A DNA stretch of 64,000 nucleotides from Utricularia gibba. Lineage: Eukaryota; Plantae; Magnoliophyta. A program made the translations under genes and the position numbers. The notes beneath the pieces were generated by a model. The model was not told the DNA's origin, searched no databases, and worked only from the letters and a program-made list of their open reading frames with translations. The stretch is from the NCBI GenBank assembly GCA_002189035.1, contig NEEC01000008.1, positions 2,914,001-2,978,000 on the forward strand, read 5' to 3'. Positions 35,301 through 60,837 of this stretch are shown here, one piece after another. How positions within the stretch are numbered: the stretch's first letter is position 1; each line of letters begins with the position of its first letter.

Positions 35301-37756
35301 GTGTCACCGCCCTCTGAGCCCAACTCACTCACTGGGGCAGCCATTGCAGCTTCTGTGAAAGTACCTCCAGGAACAACACAAACTGTTTCGTTCTCATTAG
35401 CATGGGCTTGCCCTGAAGTTAACTTTCGTAGTGGAAGAACTTATTACAGGTCATTAAATTATTGGTCTTCTGTCTGTATTTGCATGTTTATCTGGTTCTT
35501 TAAACTCGACCGATTTTTTTACCCCCTTGTTTTTTTTTATTTCATTTCTTTATCAGGCGCTACACCAAATTTTATGGTACTCATAGCAATGTGGCAATAA
35601 ATATTGCGCACGATGCAATTCTTGGTACTTCATCTAACCATTGTTGGCAAATTTTACTGACCCATGTTGTCATGTTTTTTGAAAAATGGGTTTGTCAGTG
35701 TATTAATGGTTATTAATTCATGGAGAATTCTTAAATGTATTTCAATTTTGTCATTCTTGGTTATTTCTAAATTTTTTTATACAAAAAACAAGGGCATGGA
35801 GAATGGGAGTCACAAATTGAAGCATGGCAGAGGCCCGTTCTTGAAGACAAGAGTCTCCCGGAATGGTATGCTGTGTTAAAAGTGTTGCTTCTTGGATAAC
35901 TGTAATTTCAAATTGCTCATAATTTTCTGATGCAGGTACCCTCCGACTCTTTTCAATGAGCTTTACTTCTTGAATGCGGGGGGACAATTTGGACAGGTAG
36001 TCAACTCCTTGATATTTTCTTTAAGGTTGGTGCGCTTGCTCTAATGGGAGTTCGCTTTCTCTTCAGATGGTACCCTGCCAAGTAGTAATTCGGGAAAACA
36101 TAGGCTTTGCCGCTCTATCTCTAATTTGGTTTTCAAGAATGACGATAACTTATCTGATGATGATGGAATGGCAGTCAGAATTCTTGAGAGTATTATGTTG
36201 TTGCACGAGGTTAAAATTCCTGAAATGGTAGCTTCTGCTATGGGCACACGATTGCTTCATGAAGGAGAAGAGAATGTGGGCCAGTTTCTCTATCTTGAAG
36301 GGATTGAGTATCATATGTGCAACACATATGATGTCCATTTTTATGCATCTTTTGCTCTAACTATGCTATTTCCCAAAATCGAACTTAGCATACAAAGAGA
36401 TTTTGCTGCTGCAGTGATGATGCATGATCCTAGTGGAATGACGCTTTTACAGGATGGAACATGGGCTCATAGAAAAGTCCTTGGTGCCGTTCCTCATGAT
36501 ATTGGGATGAAAGACCCATGGTTCGAATTAAATTTTTACAGTCTACACAATACTGATAGGTGGAAGGATTTGAATCCCAAGTTTGTTCTACAAGTTTATA
36601 GAGATATAGTGGCAACAAGTGACAAGAAATTTGCTCGAGCTGTGTGGCCCTCTGTGTATATTGCAATGGCATATATGGAACAGTTTGATAAGGATGAAGA
36701 TGGAATGATAGAGAACGAAGGATTTCCAGATCAGACATATGATACTTGGTCCGTATCTGGTGTCAGTGCGTACTGTGGTGGCCTTTGGGTGGCAGCCTTA
36801 CAGGCTACTTGTGCAATCGCGCATGTGGTGGGTGATGAATCTTCCGAGGAGTATTTTTGGTTTAGGTATCAGAAAGCAAGGGGAGTCTATGAGAAGTTAT
36901 GGAATGGCTCTTATTTCAATTATGATGACAGCGGTAGAGCTACAAGTTCATCCATTCAGGCTGATCAGTTGGCAGGACATTGGTAAGTGACACAAGGAAC
37001 ATACGAATCTGGTGGTACTCCATTTCATTCATGTTTTTGTATACTCAACCGCCAGCAATGATGTTTCTCTTTTGATGCTTTTAGGTACGCGCGAGCATGT
37101 GGTCTACATCCGATTGTTGACGTAGAAAAGGCCCAAAAAGCACTTGATATGGTTTATAAGTTCAATGTAATGAAAGTGAAGCAAGGGAGGATAGGGGCTG
37201 CAAACGGCATGCTGCCTAGCGGAGAGCTAGATATGTGTACCTTGCAGTCAAGGGAGATATGGAGCGGGGTAACATATGCTGTTGCAGCCAGCATGATTCA
37301 TGAAAACATGACTGAACCGGCATTCAACACCGCCGTGGGCATTCATGAAGTTGTATGGTCTGAGAGAGGCCTCGGGTGAGTGCAGTTGACACATCACAGC
37401 ATTCACTTTTTCTTTCGATAAGCACTTAACTTACAGATGTTCCTGGCACTGAATGGCCAAACAGTTATGCGTTCCAGACACCGGAGGGTTGGGACGTGGA
37501 GGGTCGATACCGATCTCTTGGGTACATGCGTCCTCTGGCAATCTGGGCGATGCAATGGGCGCTGGAACAAAACAACACCACGAGCCAAAGGCTAGTGGTG
37601 AAGCTGAAGGAGAGGGAGATACAAGAAGAATCTGTTCTCAAACAACATGTTGCTTTCATCAGCGTTGCTCGTCTCTTGAAGCTCCAACCACAGCCTGATT
37701 CAAGGAGTCGTCTACAGGTAATGTACGAATCCACATGTAAAAGGATGTTCCGATAA
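32359..37756 (+). CDS. GBA2: Non-lysosomal glucosylceramidase (GH116), ~19 exons; apparent 1-nt frameshift at G6 run 35978-35983
   Basis: GVPLGGIG|[28 protein letters not shown]|[68 protein letters not shown] and FQTPEGW. Motif NAGGTIWT|DG requires G7; only G6 is present. Confidence 0.95.
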
Positions 37757-44546: not shown

Positions 44547-44639
44547 CCCTAAGTGTTCCAGTCTGGTAAATTGTCCTCCCTAAGTGTTCCAGTCTGGTAA
44601 ATTGTCCTCCCTAAGTGTTCCAATCTGGTAAATTGTCCT
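44547..44639. repeat. 31-bp tandem repeat x3 at the broken end of an NLR LRR fragment
   Basis: The unit CCCTAAGTGTTCCA(G/A)TCTGGTAAATTGTCCT starts at 44547, 44578 and 44609. Confidence 0.95.
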
Positions 44640-44738
44640 TGGGACAGATTGCACCATTCCTCATTTTCAAATATGTAGAAAATGAATTGCAGCACCTCCA
44701 GATTGTGCAACTCCATAATAGTTCTCGTCCGAGCTATT
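44609..44738 (-). pseudogene. NLR LRR fragment (C-terminal module) from the local cluster
   Basis: ARTRTIMELHNLEVLQF..FENEEWCNLSQGQFT is near-identical in DNA to 46543-46639 and 47015-47119; it is truncated at both ends. Confidence 0.9.
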
Positions 44739-45311
44739 AATGAAAAAAGTTTTTTGTATAAAGGTTTAATTATAAATTTACTAGAATCGAAAATTAATGA
44801 ATTAGAAAACATGAAAAACACAAATACATATATATTTACATTTTTTTAATAATTTTTAATATATATTTAAATATATTAATCATTTTTAATATATTTTATT
44901 GAAAATCATAATTTACAATAAACGTATATATAAAAAAGTTGGAGTTAAAAAATGTTTGTATTGTTTTTTAATTTTTTCAAACAACGTATGTATCTAAACA
45001 ATATTTTAATAAACGTTGATATTTAAAAAATGATATAATATTTAACGTTTGAACTAAAATGATGTATTTTGAAATGTTTGTATTGAATTTAAATAAAAAC
45101 TAAAACATTTGTATTACAAAATTATTTTAATAAATCTGTGTATCTAATTATAATCAACATTTGAAACGTTCGTATTTAAACGAATTTTTTCCCGAACCAA
45201 AACCAATTAGTTCGGAACTGATCACAACTCTACTCTCAAGTTTGCTCAAGATCGCTCAAGAGATTACTATCCCATGAAGCTCTGATCAATGACTCTTAAA
45301 CGAAGACTCTT

Positions 45312-45600
45312 ATGAAGTTTCACCATCTCAAGGAGATCATATTCTTCATGTGTCCTACGCTCAAGTACTTTAGAGTGGGAGAAGAGCGATTCCCCCAACT
45401 CCAAACTCTTGGGATAGACAGCTCCCAAACAATGAGGATCTCTCATGATGATATTCATGGCATCTCAACGCTGTTGAGGATTCAAATACGATCTTGCGGA
45501 GCCTTGATCGGGGGAGACAAAGATTTCTACGTTGAGCTCCAAAATGACCAGTTGAAGATACAAGAAAAAGATATGATGATGATGATGATAGCGATTACAA
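45312..45600 (+). pseudogene. Diverged NLR LRR C-terminal fragment, inverted relative to the cluster
   Basis: KFHHLKEII..CPTLKYFRVGEERFPQLQTLGI....DDIHGISTLLRIQIRSCG...DFYVE aligns with the cluster module LKYLKVGAEQFPQLLILGI...GIPTLSSIQLGDCG...DFYV. Confidence 0.75.
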
Positions 45601-46223: not shown

Positions 46224-49200
46224 TTAAAAATTTAACATTTCTTTTTTTTTTCCTTCTTCTTCTTCCAATGTCAACAATTCATCATCAACCATGACATAGA
46301 ATTCCTCATCTGCCCAATCATACCTCCTTTCTCTTAATATTTTCTTGGCTGCTATAATGGTTGAGGCTCCACAATCCCCTAACCGAATTGATGATAGCGT
46401 TGTAATATTACATGTAATATCACAAATACCGTCCTCCCTTTTATTCGAAGAGTTAGTAGCTGGGGAAATTGCTCTTCTTCCACTTTCAAGGACTTGAGAC
46501 CACCTGGATAATCAATCCTTAATTCTTTCAGTTTGGTAAATTGTCCTTGGGACAGATTGCACCATTGATTTTCAAATGTGCAATCATAGAATCTCAGCAC
46601 CTCAAGATTGTGCAACTCCATAATAGTTCTCGTCCGAGCTTCATCAATTAAAGTGGAAGAGACTCTCAATTTCTTAAGCAAACTTGAGAGGGGGGCTCCG
46701 CCCCATGCCCATAAGCATCCTTTTTCTTTTTCTTCTTCCTCCAACATCAATAACTTGCCACCAACCTCAAGAGAGAAGTCCTCATCTGCCCAATCATACC
46801 TCCTTTCTCTTAATATTTTCTTGGCTGCTATAATGGTCAAGGGTCCACAACACCCTAACCGAATCGACAATAGCGTTGTAATATTACATGTAATATCACA
46901 AATATTGCTACTATCACTTATTTCAAGAGTTAGTAGCTGGGGAAATTGCTCTTCTTCCACTCTCAAGGACTTGAGACGAACTGGATAACGAATAATTAAT
47001 TCTTTCAGTTTGGCAAATTGTCCTTGGGACAGATTGCACCATTCCTCATTTTCAAATGTGCAACGATAGAATTCCATCACCTTGAGATTGTGCAACTCCA
47101 TAATAGTTCTCGTCCGAGCTTCATCAATTAAAGTGTGCTGGAGTTCCAATTCCTTGAGCAAACTTGGGAGGGGGGATCCATCCCATGCTGCCCTCATTCT
47201 TATGACCTTCAGATTTGGATATCGGACTGCAGTATTAGAATACCGTTTGGGCATAGGAGACCCTTCTCTATAGTCAATCATACTTCTTTGAAAGAGGAAA
47301 AAGTGTTCTCGTTGCCAGTCTTTGTGAAATCCACTTAGATAATTGATTACGTCTTTGTAACTACGCCATGTCATGTCAATTAGTTGTGTACAGATCATCA
47401 TTTCAAGCAATGGAAACTCTTGGTCTTCCAATCCTTGTCTACATAAAAGCATAGAAGGTCTACAAATCTGCCAAACTCTCTTTGACCAATCAAACTGCAT
47501 CCTTCCATCCATCTCTACATAAAAGTTGTTATCCCCCAAACTCCGCTTCTTCTCCAATATTTCCATCGCCCATTCGACAGTAGACTCTCCACAACCTTCC
47601 AATCTGATCGACTGCAAGGATGAATCATCACAAATATAAAAGGATGCATAAGGAACATTGTGTAGCCAAAGCCTTTCAAGTCGAGGACAACCAATCTCAA
47701 GACAACGATTCCCGCCATAGTTAGAAAGCCAACGATTCCCCCCATAGTCAGAAATTCCAAAGTATCTCAAACTATGTGATCCTACTATGGTGGTTCCAAC
47801 ATGGTCGTAAAAGCTGAGAGCCAAATACTCGAGATTAGGCATATCCCAAATAGCACTTCGGATTTGCTCTGAGAAGTAATTACAAAATATTCCCAATCTC
47901 TTGATCGATTTGGACAAGAAAGGGTTCTCCCAAACATACATCATGGAATCTATGCCAATTAATTGTTCCAGCACGATGTCCTCCTCATCTTGATTAGGCA
48001 AATAATCCAAAAATTTAAGTTGTGGCATCATCCTAAATGAGCGTGGTTCATGACCACGATACTGTTGAACATTCCATAGAAGATTTCCTGGAAAATGATA
48101 TTGCTCAAGTGATTCAAAATAAATAATATCCTCATTTATTCCATGAAAATGTGGAACCTTGATTTCTTTACACATAGATATGTTGCTAACTGAGAAAGTA
48201 GGATGCAGAAGCACTCCATAAATAAAGAGCTCCATTTTGACCACCTTGTTGCATTCAACGCAAAGTTGTGCACACACATACTCTATAGGTAAAATAGAAT
48301 GTATCTGATGAAAGATTCTACCATAACACAGCCATGTACTACTATTGCTCACCGGGACAATGTCACAAAACTCCATGAAATAAGTAGTGGAACAAACCAC
48401 ACATCTCGTCGCTTGAATATCAACAGATGATTTCTTTTGTCTATCGAAAATTTTATCCACTCCTGCTGCCACACATACATTCTCAATAGATGATTCCTTT
48501 CTGCATAGCTCAAACAAGAGATCATGTATTCCGATATAATTAATTTCCATGATATGATTATATTTTCTAACAAAGATCATGTTCCTTCCAATAAGATCTT
48601 TCAAATAATCTAGTGCAACCTCTTCCATTCCTCGACCTCCTTCCGATCTTACCATCATCTCAACAATCCACCATCGTATTAAATCATCAGCATCAATATT
48701 TTCATCTTCAGGATAATATGAAAAACTAAGAAAGCATAATTTAAGATGAAGCGGAAGGTTATCATAGCTCAAGTATAATGTTTTCATACAACGCTCATCA
48801 TCTTCCAAACTCACAAAGGATGTAACAGCATCCGCAACATTCCTCCAGGATTGCAAACTCATGTCAGATTTTGAGAGAAGCCCACTGATTGTAACGATTG
48901 ATAAAGGAAGTCCTTTGCAATTTCGAGCAATCTCTCTTCCGATTCCTTGGAGCTCATCCGGACATGGGACTTTTTTAGACAATAATTCCCAACTTGCCTC
49001 TTCATCTAATAAATCCATTTGGTGAATAAGTGCAGGGGAAAGAGATTTAGCAACACTTAACTTCCTTGTAGTCACAATAATCCGACTTCCATTATTCCTA
49101 TTAGGAAAGTATACTACTAATTCTTCCCAAGCCTTAGTACTCCATAAATCATCCAATGCGATCAGGTACTTATCATCAAATAGCTTCTGATGTAACATAG

Positions 49201-49938
49201 TCCCCAAATCTCTTACCTCGTGAGTTACTTTATCACCTAACATATCTTGAAGTATTTTTCGTACATCGTATTCTTGAGAAATAGTGACCCAATAGTGTTT
49301 GTCGAAGTGCCTCCCAGTCGCTGAACAATCATCATAAACTTTCTGTGCTAAAGCCGTTTTACCACTACCACCCATACCGACGATCGCTATCACTCTTCGA
49401 TCTTTCACGTGACTCTCAAGTTCCTCCTTTATCTCTTTAAGGGGGCGCTCAATTCCCACTAGAGTTGCTGCTTCCTTGGTCTTCTGATAAGAGAGGTGAA
49501 CCACTTCCTCCTTAGTGCTCCTCGAGTAGCTTGATGATTCTTCTCGAATGCTTGCTGATTGGAGTGTGATCAACTTTAGTTCATCACTCAAAAGATCAAT
49601 ATCTCGATTGATATCAAACATGGCTTTGCAAAATTCATCCCAAAAAGATGAATATCATGCACTTTCTGATCAACAACATGATAATCAAGGATATTACTCC
49701 ACTTGAAGGCATACTGGCTGAATCTTTGAGACATCTCTCTTACCTCTCGAGTCACATCCCTTGACTTGAGGCTTTCCAGTAACTTCATCCAAGAACGAAT
49801 CTTGTCTTCAAAATCACAGATCTGCTTTAGATCAACTGCTAGCAGTTTATTGTTGTGGTGCGCCTGCATGGATTGGAGAAGCTGCAAAAGACGGAGCGCA
49901 GAGTAATAAGCAGATACTATTCCCGGACCCTCTTCCAT
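46224..49938 (-). CDS. NLR-1: CC-NB-ARC-LRR (R1B/NRC-sensor-like) with three tandem LRR C-terminal caps; apparent 1-nt frameshifts at 49639-49641 and ~46436-46442
   Basis: ATG at 49938 (MEEGPG; 49944 is TTG). P-loop GMGGSGKT, kinase-2 YLIALDDLW, RNBS-B GSRIIVTTR, GLPL, CFLSFSYYPED and IHD. The restored frame ends at ~46224. Confidence 0.9.
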
Positions 49939-50169
49939 CGCCAATCACCAAACAAGATTAGTGACTGATTGGGTAATTCTGCCCTATACAGAAGAAAGAT
50001 GCGCCCCCAGAAATACTCCCCAGTTTTGCATATAAGAAGAAATAGGTTCCTTGGAATGAAGAGAAGCTATGGGTTGCAAATGACTTGACTCAAGTCTTCT
50101 ACTCATCTTCACACGTCTCTGGTATCTTATCTCTGAAAATTTTATCACCAAATAGCAGTCACATATTAT

Positions 50170-50940
50170 CATGGACAGATTAAAAATCAGCTGATGCTAA
50201 TAGATGATGAGATATTCAATTTAATGTAAAAGTAAAAGTATAATTGCATTTTTTTTTTTGTAAACTCAAGATGAACATTTGTGCTTCAATTTGTTTAAGA
50301 AAATTGTGTTTTCTGTTTTGTTTTCAAATTTTGATTCTTTTTTTTTTCTCTTCTTTAGATTTAGTTGAACTTGATGTTATATAGTTAAAAAAAATACAAC
50401 ATAATTAATTCTACATAAAAATAAGCCCCACAAAAATATTTTTTATCCTATGTTCAATTATCAATCAAATATATTTTTTTCAAAACATCTCTTTATGAGA
50501 TTATTTCGTTTTTCTTATCTTATTAAAACCCTATTAAAACATTTTCCCATGTATCAATTTTATGAAATGAATACAAAAACATCTTTAAATGATGCGTAAA
50601 TTGTTAACAAAATCATATTAAAATATAAATTTTAAATCATATTTTTTTATATGGCAATTCGTATAAAAAATGCAGTTAATTTTTGTAAAAGTTGTAAATG
50701 AAGGATCATAGTTTTAGAATTAAATAAGCATGCTAATTAGGATTGTGGTTTTAAATTTCTATTAAAAATGAATTGATACAGTATATGATGCTATATTTTG
50801 GAATCATGATTTTTGGATAAATTGTTTTGAGCTAATGAAAAATCGAATATCATTAAATCACTCATTTATTGTTTGTAATAAATGCATAGTAACACTCTAG
50901 GCCACAACAATTATTTCCTAATCATCATTTTTATTAGTAT
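50170..50940. repeat. Duplicated NLR 3'-flank and unit-junction sequence; other copies at ~45890-46130, 54586-54660 and 58693-59340
   Basis: TAAGAAAATTGTGTTTTCTGTTTTGTTTTC occurs at 50296 and 58693 with ~650 bp of colinear AT-rich sequence. AAAAATCAGCTGATGCTAATAGATGATGAGATATTCAATTTAAT occurs at ~50182 and ~54592. Confidence 0.85.
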
Positions 50941-50941
50941 T

Positions 50942-53900
50942 CTATTTCTTCTTATTCTTCTTCTTTTTTTTCTTTTTCTTCTTTTTTTCTTCCAATGACA
51001 ACAATTCACCATCAACCATAACATAGAAGTCCTCATCTGCCCAATCATACCTTCTTTGTCTTAATATTTGTTGGGCTGATCTGATGGTCGATGTTCCGCA
51101 ATCGCCTAATTGAATTGATGATAGTGTTGGAATACCACATATATCATCATCATCAGCATCTGAGATGATATTCAATGTTTCACACCCAAATATCCCAAGA
51201 ATTAGTAGTTGGGGAAATTGCTCTGCTCCCACCTTCAAATACTTGAGATCATATGGATCATAAATCATCAACTTTTTCAGTTTGCAAAATCGCCCTTGGG
51301 ACAGATTGCACCATTCCTCATTTTCAAATGCGCAACTCGAGAATCTCAGCTCCTCGAGATTGCACAACTCAATAATAGTTCTCGTTTTAGCTTCATCAAT
51401 TAAAGTGCCACAGAGATTCAATTTCTTGAGCAAACTTGGGAGGGGGATCCATCCCATGCCGACCTCATCCTTATGGCCTTCAGATTTGGAAATTGGATTG
51501 CTGTATTAGAATACCAATTGAATATATGATACATTGTCCCGTCTGCATGAAAGAGTGTAGATAAAGGACGCAATCTTGGCTTTGGAGGAAAGAGGAACAA
51601 GTGTTCTTGATGCTGTGCTTTGTTAAATCTGCTTTGATACTCGATTACATCACTATAATTATGCCTTCTTTCGTCATATCTTTGCATACCCATCATCATC
51701 ATTTCAAGCAATGCAAACTCTTCGTCATCATAATCTTCTTCTTCTTCTTTTGCATCACAATTGTTAAATCTTCCATCCGTCTCTACATAAAAGCTGTTAT
51801 CCCCCAAACGTCGCTTCCTCTCTAATACTTCCATAGCCGATTGGACAGCAGACTCTCCACAACCATCCAATGTGATTGATTGCAAGGATGAATCATCACA
51901 AATATAACAGGATGCATCACGAACATTGTGTAGCCAAAGCCTTTCAAGTCTAGGACAATCAATTTCCAGTCGGCAATTTGCGTAATAGTCAGAAATCCCC
52001 AGGTATCTCAAACTATAAGATACTATGGGCATTACATGATTGTAATGCCTGAAAGCCAAATGCTCAAGATTAGGCATATCCCGAATAGCTATTTCGAATG
52101 ACATGCAGCCCCATATTCCCAATCTCTTGATGGGTTTCGGCAAGAAAGGTTCAGCATAAATACCAAGCATTCCATCTAGACCAACTAATTGTTCCAGCAC
52201 GATGTCCTCCTCATCATGATGAGGCACAAAACCTAAAAATTTAAGTTGTGGCATTATCCTGCATGAGCTTTCTCCTGAACACAAATACTGTTGAACATTC
52301 CACAACAGATTTCCTGGAAAATGATATTGCTGAAGTGATTCAAAAGGAATAATATCTCCGCCCACTCCATGAAAATGTGAAACCTTAACTGCGTTACACT
52401 CAGATATGTCGTTAACTGAAAGAGTAGGATGCAGAAGCACTCCATAAATAAAGAGCTCCATTGTTTCAAACTTGTTGCATTTAAAACAAAATTGTGCATA
52501 GACACAATTTTCCATCTGTAAAATAGAATGTATCTGATGGAAGATTCTGCCATAACACGGCCTCATACTACTATTGCTCACGGGGACAATGTCACAAAAC
52601 CCCATGAAATAAGTAGTGGAGCAACCCACACATCTCGTCGCTTGAATGTCGACAGACGATTTCTTTTTTCTATAGAAAATTCTATCCATTCCTTCTCCCA
52701 CACATACATTCTCAATAGATGATTCCTTTCGGCATAGCTCTAACAAGAGATCATGTATTCCGATAAGTTTAATTTCCATAATATCATTATATTTTCTAAC
52801 AGAGATCATGTTCCTTCCAATAAGATCTTTCAAATAATCTAGTGCAATCTCTTCCATTCCTTGATCTCCTTCCGGTCTTACTATCGCCTCAACAATCCAC
52901 CATCGTATTAAATCATCAACTATAATATATTCATCTTCAGGATAATATGAAAAACTAAGAAAGCATAATTTAAGATGAAGCGGAAGGTTATCGTAGCTCA
53001 AGTATAATGTTTTCATACAACGCTCATTATCTTCCAAACTCACAAAGGATGTAACAGCATCCGCAACATGCCTCCAGGATTGCAAAGTCATATCAGATTT
53101 TGAGAGAAGCCCACTAATTGTGACGATTGATAAAGGAAGTCCTTTGCAATTTCGAGCGATCTCTCTTCCGATTCCATGGAGCTCAACCGAACATGGGACT
53201 GTTTTAGACAATAATTCCCAACTTGTCTCTTCATCTAATAAATCCATTTGGTGAATAAGTGCAGGGGAAAGAGATTTAGCAACATTTAACTCCCTTGTGG
53301 TCACAATAATCCGACTTCCGTTATTCTTATTAGGAAAGTATACTACTAATTCTTCCCAAGCCTTAGGACTCCATAAATCATCCAATGTGATCAAGTACCT
53401 ATGATCAAAAAGCTTCTGATATAATATAGTCCCCAAATCTCTTACCTCTTGAGTGTTGTTATCATCTAATATCTTTTGAAGTATTTTTCGTACATCGTAT
53501 TCTTGAGAAATAGTGATCCAATAGCATTTGTCGAAGCGCTTCCTAGTCACTGAAAAATCCTCATAAACTTTCCGTGCTAAAGCAGTTTTACCGCTACCAC
53601 CCATACCGACGATCACTATGACTTGTCGATCTTTGACGTGATTCACAAGTTCCTCCTTTATCCTTTGAAGAGGGCGCTCAATTCCCACTAGAGTTGCTGC
53701 CTCCTTGGTCTTCTTATAGGAGGGATGAACCACTTTCTCCTTAGCGCTTCTTAGGGAGCTAGATGATTCTTCCCGAATGCTTGCTGGTTGGAGTGTGATC
53801 GACTTTAGTTCTTCACTCAAAAGATCAATATCTCGATTGATATCAAACATGGCTTTGCGAAATTCTTCCCCAACAAGATGAATATCATGCACTTTCTGAT

Positions 53901-54168
53901 CAACAACATGATAATCAAGGATATTACTCCACTTGAAGGCATACTGGCTGAATCTTTGAGACATGTCTCTTACCACTCGAGTCACATCCCTCGAATTGAG
54001 GCTGTCCAGTAACTTCATCCAAGAACGAATCTTGTTTTCAAAATCACGTATCTGCTTTAGATCAACTGCTAGTAGATTATATTTGTGGTGCACCTGCACG
54101 GATTGGAGAAGCTGCAAAAGACGGAGCGCAGAGTAATAAGCAGATAGTATTCCCGGACCCTCTTCCAT
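50942..54168 (-). CDS. NLR-2: CC-NB-ARC-LRR with two C-terminal caps and a poly-Lys tail; apparent 1-nt frameshift at G5 run 51442-51446
   Basis: Same NB-ARC motifs. The paralogues have G6 at this position (47170-47175 and 55129-55134), giving WDGSPLPSLLK; ORF 50942-51457 carries the continuation. Confidence 0.9.
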
Positions 54169-54669
54169 CGCCAATCACCAAACAAGATTAGTGACTGATT
54201 GGGTGCTGATCTGTAATTCTGCCCTGTATAGAAGAAAGATGCACCTCCAGAAATACTCCCCAGTTTTGCATATAAGAAGAAATAGGTTCCTTGGAATGAA
54301 GAGAAGCTATGGGTTGCAAATGACTTGACTCAAGTCTGAAAATTTTATCACCAAATAGCAGCCACATATTGAGTTCGGTTGGTGGGAATGCAACATCAAC
54401 TATAAATGCATCACCATTATTGTGAAAGAAGAGAAGCCAGGGACTCGGTCAAGATACATATTTCTTAAACGAAAAATGGGCATCAATTCATATTAATCAA
54501 TTATTTGCTCTGTATCAGTTGCTGTCAGTAGTTCACATTGCTGGTTCAATCGTACGGTTCCAATAAACTGCACAAGACGAAGCACAGACTAAAAATCAGC
54601 TGATGCTAATAGATGATGAGATATTCAATTTAATTTACAAAGTAAAATTATATTTGCATTTTTTTATTC

Positions 54670-54997
54670 TTCTTTCTTTTTTTCTTATTTTCTTCCAATG
54701 ACAACAATTCATCATCAATCATAACATAGAAGCCCAATCATACATTCTTTGCCTTAATATTTGTTTGGGTGATCTGATGGTTGATGCTCCACAATTGCCT
54801 AATTGAACTTATGATAGTGTTGGAATACCACACATATCATCATCATCTGAGATGATATTCAATGTTTCACACCCAAATATCCCAAGAATTAGTAGCTGGG
54901 GAAATTGCTCTGCTCCCACCTTCAAATACTTGAGAGCATCTGGACGATTAATCTCCAACTTTTTCAGTTTGCTAAATCGCCCTTGAAACAGATTGCA
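54670..54997 (-). pseudogene. Decayed remainder of the NLR-3 terminal module
   Basis: Colinear with 50960-51300 but carries TCA>TAA at 54809-54811 and a 10-nt deletion at 54732/54733. Confidence 0.85.
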
Positions 54998-57820
54998 TCA
55001 TTCCTCATTTACAAATGTGCAACCCGAGAATCGCCGCTCCTCGAGATTGCACAACTCAATAATAGTTCTCGTTTTAGCTTCATCAATTAAAATGCCACAG
55101 AGATTCAATTTCTTGAGCAGACTTGGGAGGGGGGATCCATCCCATGCCAACCTCATGCTTATGGCCTTCACATTTGGAAATCGAATTGCAGTATTAGAAT
55201 ACCGAGACCCTGTCCCGTTTGGATGAAAGAGTTTAGATGCAGGACGGAATCTTGGGTTTCGAGGAAAGAGGAACGAGCGTTCTTGTTGCAGCGCTTTGTC
55301 AAATCTGCTTTGATACTCGATTACATCACTGTAATTATTCCTTCCCGCATCATATCTTTGCATACCCATCATCATCATTTCAAGCAATGCAAACTCTTCG
55401 TCATCATAATCTTCTTCTTCTTCTTTTGCATCACAATTGTTAAATCTTCCATCCGTCTCTACATAAAAGCTGTTATCCCCCAAACGTCGCTTCCTCTCTA
55501 ATACTTCCATAGCCGATTGGACAGCAGACTCTCCACAACCATCCAATGTGATTGATTGCAAGGATGAATCATCACAAATATAACAGGATGCATCACGAAC
55601 ATTGTGTAGCCAAAGCCTTTCAAGTCTAGGACAATCAATTTCCAGTCGGCAATTTGCGTAATAGTCAGAAATCCCCAGGTATCTCAAACTATAAGATACT
55701 ATGGGCATTACATGATTGTAATGCCTGAAAGCCAAATGCTCAAGATTAGGCATATCCCGAATAGCTATTTCGAATGACATCATGCAGCCCCATATTCCCA
55801 ATCTCTTGATGGGTTTCGGCAAGAAAGGTTCAGCATAAATACCAAACATTCCATCTAGACCAACTAATTGTTCCAGCACGATGTCCTCCTCATCATGATG
55901 AGGCACAAAACCTAAAAATTTAAGTTGTGGCATTATCCTGCATGAGCTTTCTCCTGAACACAAATACTGTTGAACATTCCACAACAGATTTCCTGGAAAA
56001 TGATATTGCTGAAGTGATTCAAAAGGAATAATATCTCCGCCCACTCCATGAAAATGTGAAACCTTAACTGCGTTACACTCAGATATGTCGTTAACTGAAA
56101 GAGTAGGATGCAGAAGCACTCCATAAATAAAGAGCTCCATTGTTTCAAACTTGTTGCATTTAAAACAAAATTGTGCATAGACACAATTTTCCATCTGTAA
56201 AATAGAATGTATCTGATGGAAGATTCTGCCATAACACGGCCTCATACTACTATTGCTCACGGGGACAATGTCACAAAACCCCATGAAATAAGTAGTGGAG
56301 CAACCCACACATCTCGTCGCTTGAATGTCGACAGACGATTTCTTTTTTCTATAGAAAATTCTATCCATTCCTTCTCCCACACATACATTCTCAATAGATG
56401 ATTCCTTTCGGCATAGCTCTAACAAGAGATCATGTATTCCGATAAGTTTAATTTCCATAATATCATTATATTTTCTAACAGAGATCATGTTCCTTCCAAT
56501 AAGATCTTTCAAATAATCTAGTGCAATCTCTTCCATTCCTTGATCTCCTTCCGGTCTTACTATCGCCTCAACAATCCACCATCGTATTAAATCATCAACT
56601 ATAATATATTCATCTTCAGGATAATATGAAAAACTAAGAAAGCATAATTTAAGATGAAGCGGAAGGTTATCGTAGCTCAAGTATAATGTTTTCATACAAC
56701 GCTCATTATCTTCCAAACTCACAAAGGATGTAACAGCATCCGCAACATGCCTCCAGGATTGCAAAGTCATATCAGATTTTGAGAGAAGCCCACTAATTGT
56801 GACGATTGATAAAGGAAGTCCTTTGCAATTTCGAGCGATCTCTCTTCCGATTCCATGGAGCTCAACCGAACATGGGACTGTTTTAGACAATAATTCCCAA
56901 CTTGTCTCTTCATCTAATAAATCCATTTGGTGAATAAGTGCAGGGGAAAGAGATTTAGCAACATTTAACTCCCTTGTGGTCACAATAATCCGACTTCCGT
57001 TATTCTTATTAGGAAAGTATACTACTAATTCTTCCCAAGCCTTAGGACTCCATAAATCATCCAATGTGATCAAGTACCTATGATCAAAAAGCTTCTGATA
57101 TAATATAGTCCCCAAATCTCTTACCTCTTGAGTGTTTTTATCATCTAATATCTTTTGAAGTATTTTTTGTACATCGTATTCTTGAGAAATAGTGAACCAA
57201 TAGCATTTGTCAAAGTGCTTCCTAGTCACTGAAAAATCCTCATAAACTTTCTGTGCTAAAGCCGTTTTACCACTACCACCCATACCGACGATCGCTATGA
57301 CTCGTCGATCTTTCACGTGACTCTCAAGTTTCTCCTTTATCTTTTTAAGGGGGCACTCAATTCCCACTAGAGTTGCTGCCTCCTTGGTCTTCTCATAAGA
57401 GAGATGAACCACTTCCCCTTTGGTGCTCCTCAAGGAACTAGATGATTCTCCCCGAATGCTCATTAGTTCTTCTATCAACATCACTAATTCTCCATAGAAA
57501 GTATGCACAGCTCCACCAAACTCAACGCCATACACTCCACACTTTTGATCAACAACATGATAGTCGATCATATTACTCCAGTTGAAGGCACAATGGCTGA
57601 ATCTTTGCAACAGGGCTTTTATACCTGGGGTATGATCTGTTGCCGTGAGGCCTTCCAATAATTCTATCCAAGCGTGAACCTTGTCTCGAAAACCATGTAT
57701 CTGCTCCATATCAACGGCAAGCAGTTTATATTTGTTGTGCACTTGCACGGATTCAAGAAGCTGCAGGAGACGCAGCGCAGAGTGATAAGCTGATAGTAGT
57801 ATTCTCGAATCCCCGGCCAT
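54998..57820 (-). CDS. NLR-3: CC-NB-ARC-LRR, open for 940 aa and truncated in its second LRR module by TGG>TGA
   Basis: Uninterrupted ORF with all NB-ARC motifs. The stop at 54998-55000 replaces the W of EEWCNL found in the paralogues. Confidence 0.9.
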   Translation of the reverse strand: MAGDSRILLSAYHSALRLLQLLESVQVHNKYKLLAVDMEQIHGFRDKVHAWIELLEGLTATDHTPGIKALLQRFSHCAFNWSNMIDYHVVDQKCGVYGVEFGGAVHTFYGELVMLIEELMSIRGESSSSLRSTKGEVVHLSYEKTKEAATLVGIECPLKKIKEKLESHVKDRRVIAIVGMGGSGKTALAQKVYEDFSVTRKHFDKCYWFTISQEYDVQKILQKILDDKNTQEVRDLGTILYQKLFDHRYLITLDDLWSPKAWEELVVYFPNKNNGSRIIVTTRELNVAKSLSPALIHQMDLLDEETSWELLSKTVPCSVELHGIGREIARNCKGLPLSIVTISGLLSKSDMTLQSWRHVADAVTSFVSLEDNERCMKTLYLSYDNLPLHLKLCFLSFSYYPEDEYIIVDDLIRWWIVEAIVRPEGDQGMEEIALDYLKDLIGRNMISVRKYNDIMEIKLIGIHDLLLELCRKESSIENVCVGEGMDRIFYRKKKSSVDIQATRCVGCSTTYFMGFCDIVPVSNSSMRPCYGRIFHQIHSILQMENCVYAQFCFKCNKFETMELFIYGVLLHPTLSVNDISECNAVKVSHFHGVGGDIIPFESLQQYHFPGNLLWNVQQYLCSGESSCRIMPQLKFLGFVPHHDEEDIVLEQLVGLDGMFGIYAEPFLPKPIKRLGIWGCMMSFEIAIRDMPNLEHLAFRHYNHVMPIVSYSLRYLGISDYYANCRLEIDCPRLERLWLHNVRDASCYICDDSSLQSITLDGCGESAVQSAMEVLERKRRLGDNSFYVETDGRFNNCDAKEEEEDYDDEEFALLEMMMMGMQRYDAGRNNYSDVIEYQSRFDKALQQERSFLFPRNPRFRPASKLFHPNGTGSRYSNTAIRFPNVKAISMRLAWDGSPLPSLLKKLNLCGILIDEAKTRTIIELCNLEERRFSGCTFVNEE

Positions 57821-59344
57821 CGCCAGTCAATAAACTCGACCACTTGTTGGGTGCCGATCTTCAACCCCGCCCCTGTCAAAGAGAGTCCCCAATTTCACAC
57901 ACCAGAAGAAGTGGGTTTAGGAGTTCAATGAAGAGAAGGTAGCACCACAGCGTCTATGAATGATTGAGTCAACAGGAAGGCGTCGTTCTCCAGTAAGAGT
58001 CTTTTTTCTGCTTTATCAAGAAACAGCACCCACACGTCTTTGAAAAAATTGTCACAAATAATTGGTACGGACTCATATAAATTATTAGTTTTTAGAATCA
58101 TGTTTATAAAAATTACAAAGTTTTTTCCAACTCATTATTCATATTTTCCAAGTTACACATTTTCCAAACATATCCTTTCAAATAATATCATTTTCCATAA
58201 GTTTTATTTAATTCTTTTTTTTCTTAGACAAGAAAAAATAATATCATTTATCCAATAAGTTTCCAAATGCAAACAAGTTATGTACGGTAAAGCTTTTTTT
58301 ATATATATACAAAAATGATTAAAACCCCAATTATTTCAAATGATAACTACATTTTTGTGTTGTCGCACTGAAATCAAGCACAAAAAATAAAAAACATTAA
58401 TGTATTAGTAGTCTATTAAAATCAACTATCACAATTCTACTCCTACGCAGAATTCTTTTCCATTCTATTAACTTTCTTTACACTTCCGCGCTTCTTAAAA
58501 ACCGTATTAGCGATGCTTATACTCTAACATGTAAAAACAATTTGTAAAAAGTTTGCATAAAAGAACTAGATTGTGTACTTTATGAATTTGGATATTTAAT
58601 GAGACATATTAAAAATTTACTTCTATCTAATATCAGATTGAATCCATATTTTCTCTCAATTTTTTTTGCTATTTTCATCGCATTATTGTGTCTAAGAAAA
58701 TTGTGTTTTCTGTTTTGTTTTCCAATTATGATTCTTCTTTTTTCTCTTCTTTAGAATTTTTTTGGGCTTAATATTATAAATTTAAAAAATACACACTAAT
58801 CATCTTTACATCAAATTAAACCCCTAAAAAATAATTTTTATGCCACTTTCTACTTACTAATCAAACATATTTTTTCAAAACATCTCTTTATTAAAATATA
58901 TGGACTTTCTTATTCATATATTTCTATTAAAATATTTTCTCATGTATCAACTTTACGAAAACAAACACATTGTTAAATAAAACTTAAATTGTTAAGAAAA
59001 TCATATGACCATATATAGTTTTTAGATCATATTTTCTTGTATGGCAATTTGTAAAAAAAAAAATTGCAGCTAACTTTTGTAAAAGCGGTAAATGAAGGAT
59101 GATGGTTTTTAGAATAAAATAAACATGTTGATTAGGAAAATGATTTTGAATTTATATTAAAAATGAAATGAGATAGTATATAAATATATATTTTGGAATC
59201 AGAATTTGTGGATCAAATCATTTTGAAGCATTGAAAAATCAAACAATCAATAAATCACTGATTTTTTGCTTCTAATGAATATGTAGAAGGACTTGTACAC
59301 TACAACAATTATTTCCCAATCCTCATTTTTGTTAGTTTCCTTTT

Positions 59345-59618
59345 TATTCTTCTTCTTCCTCCAACGTCAATAACTGCCATCAACCACAAGAGAGAAGCCC
59401 TCATCTGCCCATTCATACCTCCTTTCTCTTAAAATTTTCTTGGCTGATCTAATGGTAGAGGCTCCGCAATCCCATAACTGAATTGACGATAGCGTTGTAA
59501 TATTACATGTAATATCACAAATATTGCTACTATCACTTATTTCAAGAGTTAGTAGCTGGGGAAATTGCTCTTCTTCCACTTTCAAGGACTTGAGACCATC
59601 TGCACAATTAATCACTAA
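59345..59618 (-). pseudogene. NLR-4 remnant: last ~85 codons of the LRR, with its 3' flank (58693-59340)
   Basis: GLKSLKVEEEQFPQLLTLEISDSSNICDITCNITTL...RERRYEWADEGFSLVVDG is near-identical to the NLR-1 modules; similarity stops at TAA 59616-59618. Confidence 0.9.
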
Positions 59619-60837
59619 GGTTGTGTTTGGTAATAAGGATAAAATAGAATATTCTAATATGTAGTATAATAATAACACGTTTAGTAATCTAAAGTAAATT
59701 TTTCTGGGATACTTTTTTCATTTCTATAAATCATAAAATTATCTCCATCAAAACATTTCCTTAATTTTATACCTAATATATGAATAAATTTTTGATTATG
59801 AAAAGTCTAAAATACCCATAAATACATCTACATATTAAATTAAATTTGGGGGAAAATTATTTTTCAACTATAACGATTTTGTTTCCCCCCAACCTGCGAA
59901 TATCTCCCTCCATCTACGAAATTTCTTCCTCAACCTATGAAATTTTCTACATCAACTTGCAAAATTTGGATTGAAGACCCATTGTTGGGTCTCAAATTCA
60001 GGTAATTGAGGTTCATGTTTTGACTGTTCGGCAGCACAACAAAGTATTCAATCAGTGTCCCACTCATTTGGAGACATCAAAATTGAAGTATAATAGTTGA
60101 GATGAATGAATAATTTCTTTAATTATTTTTTGCACTGTTCTTGATGTGTGTACGCATAAACATGTAGTCTCTCATGCATTAATTATTATATGTGATGAAT
60201 TAATTGTAAAAACCCAAAGTTTTTTTTAATGGAATCGATTGATGAGAATGCTCAATTATTACTATTGGCACATTTGCTGCAAAGGAATTTCGAAATTGCT
60301 CATATTATTATGTTGCTCCGACTACGTTCTCATGGTTCAAGACATCAATGTCGATATAAATTAATTAGCAACATAAACAACACAGCTTTGGAGGAACTGA
60401 GGATGAATTGGAATGTCTTTGGACGAATGTGTTGTCTACTTCTTAATTATGCAAGGTTTCGTGACTCCTCTATCCACTGTTAATAATATCCTTGAAAACG
60501 ATAATAAGAATACGTCATTCTTCAACACTCCACCCGCGTTTCGATTTCAATTGACCATTGTTGATCTCTATGTGGGACATGCTCATTTCGCACAAAAAAT
60601 TGGAGAATTATTGAAAAGTTGAAGCCAAGAACCCTACTTAGATAAAAAAAAATATATAAAAAGGTAAAAATATGTTTGTTCAAAATCTTTAAAAAATAAT
60701 CAAATATATATCTACCAAACAACTTATTCCAATCCACAAATTACATACTACCAAATATAATGTACACTTATAGAAGGAATAATTTTTATTTGATATAAAT
60801 TATACAAATAGTACTAAAATCATTACCAAACACGGCC
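59619..60837 (+). mobile_element. Non-autonomous PIF/Harbinger element, 1.2 kb, with a transposase N-terminal remnant
   Basis: TIRs GGTTGTGTTTGGTAAT (59619) and ATTACCAAACACGGCC (ending 60837) match at 14/16; flanks are TAA and TAG. Internal 60229-60620 encodes ELRMNWNVFGRMCCLLLNYARFRDS, similar to the recalled Harbinger N-terminal ELRMDRNTFGRLCxLL...LxDS motif. Confidence 0.8.

Follow-up and report, generated by a model that had tools for sequence, protein, structure and literature searches.

A 64,000-nt stretch of the Utricularia gibba genome (GenBank assembly GCA_002189035.1, contig NEEC01000008.1, positions 2,914,001 to 2,978,000 of the forward strand; hereafter the window) contains a tandem array of three nucleotide-binding leucine-rich repeat (LRR) receptor genes on the minus strand, NLR-1, NLR-2 and NLR-3 (Table 1). 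In these genes the C-terminal block of a canonical receptor (NLR), a run of LRRs closed by a cap, is followed by a linker and a second such module, and in NLR-1 by a third. It is considered probable that the gene's own last coding block has been re-added in frame behind its normal end, and that the genes form a decaying array of functional-type receptors.

All three genes encode an NB-ARC domain (PF00931, E 4e-51 to 1e-52), followed by the winged helix (WH) PF23559, WH_DRP (E 6e-12 to 8e-13). The NB-ARC motifs are intact in the open reading frames (ORFs), with the P-loop GMGGSGKT, kinase 2 LI(T/A)LDDLW, RNBS-B GSRIIVTTR, GLPL as CKGLPLSI, and IHD at the MHD site. Pfam gave no match for the first ~150 aa, the position expected of an N-terminal coiled coil (CC), and in NLR-1 this stretch is out of frame. 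A TIR domain was likewise not matched in the Pfam scan of the array proteins. The nearest public proteins are Lamiales NLRs automatically named 'late blight resistance protein homolog R1A/R1B', which are 29-47% identical (e.g., P0002 of Rehmannia, P0003 of Sesamum and P0080 of Striga), and no closer relatives were found in the public protein collection. When the whole NLR-3 was used as query, the top match P0001 owed its high score only to the presence of two NB-ARCs and was set aside; the other matches were distant Lamiales NLRs. Judged by domains and matches, the array is best described as tandem CC-NB-ARC-LRR paralogues of a lineage-specific subfamily that is nearest to these Lamiales NLRs.

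A hidden Markov model (HMM) of the terminal module was built from 50 canonical relatives, using their C-terminal 149 positions. It gave exactly one match, full-length to its end, in 132 of the 156 relatives retrieved, and from the module end to the C-terminus of canonical relatives a median of 20 aa remains. The main ORF of NLR-1 was matched three times, at aa 565-705 (E 2.2e-9), 818-953 (E 6.4e-26) and 979-1061 (E 1e-14, cut short). Pfam LRR models gave only sub-threshold matches on the array modules, which the family-specific HMM recognized at E 2e-9 to 6e-26. In BLASTP searches with NLR-1 residues 480-706 and 793-965, both alignments extended to the extreme C-termini of the relatives (best E 1e-9 and 1e-11, respectively). 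The modules have the cap consensus IPTL.SI.L..C..S...SAK.I..EQ...GN..L.V in common with the last ~140 residues of the relatives, and the repeated block includes an acidic tail in addition to some 5-8 terminal LRRs and the C-terminal cap helix. Behind the WH, the main ORF of NLR-1 continues with a middle region rich in Cys, followed by module 1, the linker, module 2 and module 3 in truncated form. The first-pass annotation of this DNA had placed cap 1 of NLR-1 at ~47505-47620, and it was indeed found at 47620-47504. The annotation also regarded this cap as reached early, which was not borne out: cap 1 lies ~800 aa into NLR-2 and NLR-3, where canonical relatives, mostly 810-950 aa long, come to their end. 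The predicted read-on into a second capped LRR module was recovered in the same frame in NLR-1, through a linker of about 100 aa (47503-47171) instead of ~90 aa. Together, these matches indicate that the stacked caps are real.

As the first-pass annotation had suggested, AlphaFold2 models were used to see whether the modules form separate solenoids, and modules 1 and 2 were each predicted as a short LRR solenoid with a cap helix. When paralogues and relatives were aligned as input, the model of module 2 had eight beta strands, the cap helix and a closing strand at a predicted local distance difference test (pLDDT) score >90. Its best match among solved structures was the C-terminal LRR of NRC2 (8rfh_A, residues 669-884), with a Z score of 14.9 and a root-mean-square deviation of 2.5 Å over 173 residues. 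For module 1, a first alignment (A2) smeared the query across the NB-ARC of its homologues and was dropped for an NB-ARC-anchored alignment (A3); with the latter, module 1 showed the same build as module 2, strands followed by the cap helix, at pLDDT 70-93. The NLR-1 ORF thus has a two-solenoid layout in the models, with module 1 at aa 570-706, module 2 at aa ~800-957 and a low-confidence linker between them, and a separate short LRR solenoid, individually capped, is predicted for each module.

The linker contains the conserved islands EF.LLEMM, Y.DVI.Y.S.F.K, FLF and YSNTA..PN.K.I.MR.AWDGSP. No Pfam family was assigned to it even at E <= 1, HMMER gave no match in 1.84 billion representatives, and among the canonical relatives BLASTP gave no match to it, unlike the flanking modules. 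An exhaustive HMMER search with NLR-1 aa 560-965 returned 36 weak matches, none spanning the linker, and among the 1.84 billion cluster representatives no protein covered cap 1, linker and module 2. A word-index protein search with NLR-1 aa 660-965 gave no match, and the ESM Atlas returned only generic NLR-LRR fragments for aa 700-960. Four proteins with two modules (P0123, P0129, P0135 and P0131) proved to be gene models in which tandem genes are concatenated, a CC/NB-ARC lying between the two modules, and P0121, P0122 and P0125 were spurious repeat, receptor-like kinase and BTB matches. A one-off parallel is P0143, an RPP8/RPP13-like LRR protein of 718 aa in which the last LRR block is near-perfectly repeated at the C-terminus, possibly a messy gene model.

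Region-wise dN/dS between the three paralogues, which are the whole sample of the selection tests, is ~1 almost everywhere including the NB-ARC, and coding can thereby not be separated from neutral evolution. Because this measure was uninformative, indel phase, a stop-free simulation and a comparison of core and non-core positions were used. In the three-gene DNA alignment, the linker and module 2 show six older indels that distinguish NLR-1 from NLR-2/3 (33, 3, 27, 12, 21 and 6 nt). All of these are in frame, and every frame-breaking indel is private to a single gene. Assuming that one third of neutral indels are in frame, the binomial p for at least 6 of 8 is ~0.02. Over linker and module 2, NLR-1 and NLR-2 differ at 186 sites without any stop, an outcome reached in 0.05% of neutral Monte-Carlo trials (P = 5e-4). 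The linker has a GC content of 39%, modules 2 and 3 of 40-41% and the rest of the coding sequence (CDS) of 37-45%, compared with 20-27% for the AT-rich 3' flank and two spacers and 37% for a third spacer (54200-54640). The AT-rich 3' flank, which is common to the array units, adjoins the last module and never cap 1.

Amino-acid changes in module 2 between NLR-1 and NLR-2 are unevenly distributed, with 16 of 67 family-core positions changed versus 35 of 66 elsewhere (Fisher p = 7e-4). In a neutral simulation on the actual codons, 31.5 core changes were expected compared to the 16 observed, and 16 or fewer occurred in 0 of 20,000 runs, while the 35 non-core changes are close to the neutral expectation of 31.8. 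Substitutions distributed in this way fit an LRR that is translated and folded, its scaffold being conserved and its surface free or diversifying, and such a combination explains why region-wide dN/dS is uninformative. The tests indicate that the extension was kept as coding sequence, with the scaffold of module 2 under purifying selection, for most of the divergence of the paralogues, and it was probably translated.

Module 2 is present in all three genes and is therefore older than their split. The shared layout points firmly to a common ancestor with a complete NLR ending in cap 1, followed by a linker of about 100 aa and module 2 with cap 2. Within NLR-1, module 2 (47188-46718) and module 3 (46708-46240) lie head-to-tail and are 85% identical; in the module tree they are sisters (support 92), as are the module 2 copies of NLR-2 and NLR-3 (88). 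Module 3 is thus well supported as a later, young in-frame tandem duplication of about 480 nt in NLR-1. The two modules are joined behind the acidic tail at AAGGATG, which had been noticed near 46715 and sits at 46722-46716; AAGGA also occurs at the start of the NLR-2 module and in the tail of an orphan copy. This junction is compatible with a microhomology-mediated duplication. The third module that the first-pass annotation saw at 46715-46240 is present, as supported by the HMM match (1e-14) and the identity to module 2; its cap has left the frame through the loss of 1 nt. Likewise, the proposed read-through fusion with partial 3' duplicates describes module 3 well, being a tandem copy and tree sister of module 2. 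For the older cap 1-linker-module 2 junction, where the linker is unmatched and the tree splits three ways, the same origin is plausible.

The array itself appears to evolve through sequence exchange. NLR-2 and NLR-3 share an exact tract of 1,290 nt (53457-52168 = 57136-55847) and remain nearly the same for some 1.8 kb. In the linker and module 2 they are 88-94% alike and at the 5' ends 66-79%, whereas the 5' end of NLR-2 is 94-96% like that of NLR-1. The pattern suggests a recent event of gene conversion or unequal crossover, or else a collapse during assembly. Beside the array, the orphan module at 59633-59336, which lacks an upstream NB-ARC and carries a 1-nt deletion after its cap, is what is left of a fourth array unit.

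Each of the three genes carries frame-breaking lesions. In NLR-1, the frame of module 3 is lost by 1 nt at ~46436-46428, which leads to the stop of the ORF at 46379 and puts cap 3 in another frame, and the CC ORF is frameshifted relative to the NB-ARC ORF at a T/G run near 49642. In NLR-2, a 1-nt deletion at 51447, where a run of six C is shortened to five, puts cap 2 out of the NB-ARC frame, while module 2 is otherwise open. In NLR-3, a TGA at 55000-54998 replaces the TGG of the other copies, and a second stop (54811-54809) and a 10-nt deletion near 54733 in cap 2 follow. The claim that the caps are stacked in one reading frame is upheld for caps 1 and 2 of NLR-1, and fails for cap 3 of NLR-1, cap 2 of NLR-2 and module 2 of NLR-3. 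The copy number of 3, 2 and 1 given for the three genes is correct as a count of modules, including the 'effectively 1' of NLR-3, and incorrect as a count of translated caps. Single-base length changes in homopolymer runs account for 2 of the 4 frame-breakers. The 1-nt lesions of NLR-1 and NLR-2 could be real slippage mutations or errors of the assembly consensus; the latter are possible because of the homopolymer runs and an apparent frameshift in an unrelated NYN/LOTUS gene of the window. In that gene (2379-734, minus strand), the NYN-domain ORF overlaps the OST-HTH/LOTUS ORF in a different frame, and the NYN reading seems to carry on in another frame near 1850, as in a frameshifted gene or after an assembly indel. 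The array copies are at different stages of decay, and NLR-3 has indeed lost module 2.

Several observations weigh against a re-added block in an array of functional-type receptors. In the assembly, a complete protein reaching from the CC to the last cap is encoded by none of the three genes (0/3), and no ORF extends uninterrupted between a start codon and the last cap. Values of dN/dS close to 1, as under relaxed constraint, were obtained for the linker (1.24-1.32), module 2 (0.87-0.89) and the NB-ARC (0.95), and a value of 1.48 between modules 2 and 3. In the AlphaFold2 models, the linker and the Cys-rich middle region (aa 384-567) fold at pLDDT <50, the latter at ~30 even under the NB-ARC-anchored alignment. 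The module tree splits three ways, into module 1, modules 2/3 and the canonical C-termini, and points to neither module 1 nor another NLR as the source of the first extra module. Finally, a recognition role of the extra modules is purely inferential.

These observations bear most directly on the main rival explanation, that a partial 3' copy was fused by stop loss, the extension was never functional and three pseudogenes are drifting neutrally. This is judged unlikely, though it is the alternative to be taken most seriously. At least one private frame-breaking lesion in every copy, dN/dS about 1 in NB-ARC, linker and module 2, and the module debris at 59633-59336, 45255-45572 and 44734-44588 would all be expected from it. 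Neutral drift is harder to reconcile with older indels that are all in frame, a region that is free of stops (P = 5e-4) and module 2 scaffold changes at half of the neutral prediction (0/20,000 simulations). The exon-like GC of the extension and the intact P-loop, kinase 2, GLPL and IHD motifs of the NB-ARC argue in the same direction, and the lesions all lie on terminal branches, two of them as 1-nt changes in homopolymer runs. Decay and the re-added block are compatible, since the architecture may be functional in the family while these three copies are partly dead.

NLR genes are known to use alternative 3' ends, and the extension could accordingly lie outside the mature protein: an intron, alternative polyadenylation or splicing would drop it, or the modules would serve as alternative 3' exons, leaving one cap per protein. 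This is improbable, as no copy has an in-frame stop after cap 1, linker indels preserve the frame and the shared AT-rich 3' flank starts only past the last module. The linker has the GC content of CDS (39%) and not that of the AT-rich flank and spacers (20-27%), and an intron within it was judged unlikely from this composition. An assembly artefact, in which reads of a repetitive NLR cluster were mis-joined or collapsed and so gave rise to the modules or the whole array, is very hard to credit in spite of the exact 1,290-nt tract of NLR-2/NLR-3 and several 1-nt frameshifts, one in the unrelated NYN/LOTUS gene: three diverged copies show the same order of cap 1, linker and module 2. In addition, differences at 15% of sites between modules 2 and 3 of NLR-1, and at 10-30% between modules from different genes, mean that these are distinct loci and not duplicated reads.

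In the favoured explanation, the last block of the gene, consisting of terminal LRRs, cap helix and acidic tail, would have been appended in frame after cap 1 and the linker, and NLR-1 later gained its third module when about 480 nt were duplicated head-to-tail. In sensor CC-NLRs (CNLs) of this clade, such as Rx/Gpa2, recognition specificity resides in the C-terminal LRRs. The extra solenoids, tethered by the linker, might provide additional or alternative ligand-binding faces; alternatively, they might compete with module 1 for docking to the NB-ARC. The cassette number would shift through unequal exchange inside the array. The idea of a 'modular sensor surface', proposed in the first-pass annotation, may apply here and gains indirect support because the scaffold of module 2 is under purifying selection and its other positions change at the neutral rate or faster. 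A wider version of this explanation is put forward only tentatively: genome-wide, a CC-NLR subfamily would enlarge its sensor by serial in-frame addition of self-contained cassettes of linker, terminal LRRs and cap, so that each receptor has one to three independently folding, diversifying recognition solenoids, their number being reshuffled by unequal exchange in clusters.

Compared with known systems, the array genes are closest to the canonical Lamiales NLRs named R1A/R1B, which likewise have NB-ARC and WH with all NB-ARC motifs, and to whose last ~140 residues both modules align. These relatives have the terminal module once, whereas the array genes have it two or three times together with the novel linker. 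They also have an N-terminal LRR half, in place of which the array genes have a Cys-rich stretch that is not folded by AlphaFold2. In NLR-1 this stretch spans 48470-47920 (aa 384-567), between the MHD motif and module 1, the site of the N-terminal LRRs in canonical relatives. NRC2, the best solved match of module 2 (17% identity), has a single, continuous LRR with one end. In NLRs with integrated domains (NLR-IDs), as in the array, an extra domain is added to a complete NLR. The extra part is here the own LRR end and not a foreign decoy; the linker has no Pfam family, the remaining extension is NLR-derived LRR, and an integrated non-NLR domain is not present. In flax L/M alleles and Arabidopsis RPP5, the copy number of LRR blocks reportedly varies by intragenic tandem duplication, which alters the length of the sensor. 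These duplications are said to lie inside one continuous TIR-NLR LRR, without repeat of a terminal cap and without a linker, both of which the array has.

Two further systems resemble the array in layout. [quoted passage not shown] The same part states that these repeats hold most of the polymorphism and that the cluster has truncated and frameshifted paralogues (PMC6141779). As far as this part goes, the end domain of an NLR C-terminus was multiplied by intragenic duplication in both systems, but Ma is a TIR-NLR that repeats a post-LRR (C-JID-type) exon, and the array genes are CC-NLRs that repeat the last LRRs and cap in an intronless single open frame. The array has neither the TIR nor the repeated PL domains, and the likeness is one of analogy, not homology. 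Yr87/Lr85 of Aegilops is a functional CC-NLR with an LRR of 36 repeats, described as unusually elongated, and a C-terminus modelled as two LRR horseshoes with a short spacer (PMC11568145). Like NLR-1, it has two separate LRR solenoids and a spacer in one polypeptide, a likeness of layout taken from description and models. It is a grass gene, and its description has neither the terminal cap-block repeats nor the copy-number series of the array. Seen against these functional analogues, Prunus Ma and Yr87/Lr85, the layout appears unusual and not unprecedented. New compared with the known cases is that, in a CC-NLR, terminal LRRs, cap and tail are repeated as a self-contained cassette with a novel linker.

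Table 1. Coordinates of the NLR array and its module fragments, in positions of the window.
Feature	Coordinates	Strand	Remarks
NLR-1	49944-46224	-	NB-ARC gene, one of three in tandem
NLR-1 N-terminal CC-like ORF	49588-49944	-	In a different frame from the main ORF (1-nt shortfall, T/G run near 49642)
NLR-1 main ORF, 1080 aa	46379-49621	-	NB-ARC 49450-48758; WH 48715-48506
NLR-1 module 1, terminal LRRs and cap 1	47507-47929	-	Cap 1 at 47620-47504; supported by HMM, BLASTP and AlphaFold2
NLR-1 linker, about 105-110 aa	47171-47503	-	Without homologue; conserved islands; GC 39%; indels in frame
NLR-1 module 2, LRRs and cap 2	46763-47170	-	Cap 2 at 46876-46763, in the frame of cap 1
AAGGATG, module 2/module 3 junction of the NLR-1 tandem duplication	46716-46722	-	
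NLR-1 module 3, LRR part	46436-46711	-	Main frame retained, then 1-nt deletion relative to module 2 (~46436-46428)
NLR-1 cap 3, tail and stop	46224-46427	-	Cap 46427-46287, stop 46226-46224; frame differs from the main ORF
NLR-2	54174-50942	-	NB-ARC gene of the same tandem array; stop at 50942
NLR-2 ORF, 918 aa	51418-54174	-	CC, NB-ARC 53679-52987, module 1 with cap 1 (51888-51772), linker; terminates shortly behind the 1-nt deletion at 51447
NLR-2 module 2, cap 2 (51127-51014) and poly-Lys tail	50942-51457	-	Open in a shifted frame; HMM E 1.7e-29
NLR-3	57820-~54720	-	NB-ARC gene of the same tandem array
NLR-3 ORF, 940 aa	54998-57820	-	CC, NB-ARC 57352-56666, cap 1 55564-55448, linker, LRRs 1-2 of module 2
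NLR-3 rest of module 2, degenerate	54719-54997	-	Stop 54811-54809; cap lacks 10 nt near 54733
Orphan 3' half of a module	59336-59633	-	Cap 59495-59382, then shared AT-rich 3' flank to 58689
Degenerate module copy, inverted, cap helix deleted	45255-45572	+	Downstream of NLR-1; contains IRSCGALIGGDKDFYVEL
Short fragment of module LRRs	44588-44734	-	Downstream of NLR-1

Two other genes or elements were observed in the window. Between 40429 and 38099 on the minus strand, ORFs encoding a FAR1 DNA-binding domain, a MULE transposase domain and a SWIM zinc finger form a Mutator-like/FAR1-type element or a domesticated gene. An exon-sized ORF at 36126-36986 on the plus strand matches the catalytic region of GH116 (DUF608) at E 1e-108 and belongs to a conserved housekeeping gene.

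For annotation, the array means that domain callers based on Pfam LRR models miss these modules entirely and that such genes will probably be split or truncated by gene predictors. Should the extra modules be translated and active in recognition, they would represent a simple genetic route to more sensing surface, in which a tandem copy of the last ~0.5 kb of CDS is attached in frame after the acidic tail without any change to the core NB-ARC switch. The genes would then provide a natural series with one, two and three copies for testing the role of the C-terminal LRR end and cap in autoinhibition and specificity of sensor CNLs. If serial addition of cassettes were to apply to the subfamily, it would be the CNL counterpart of the Ma PL repeats and a distinct route to multi-specificity.

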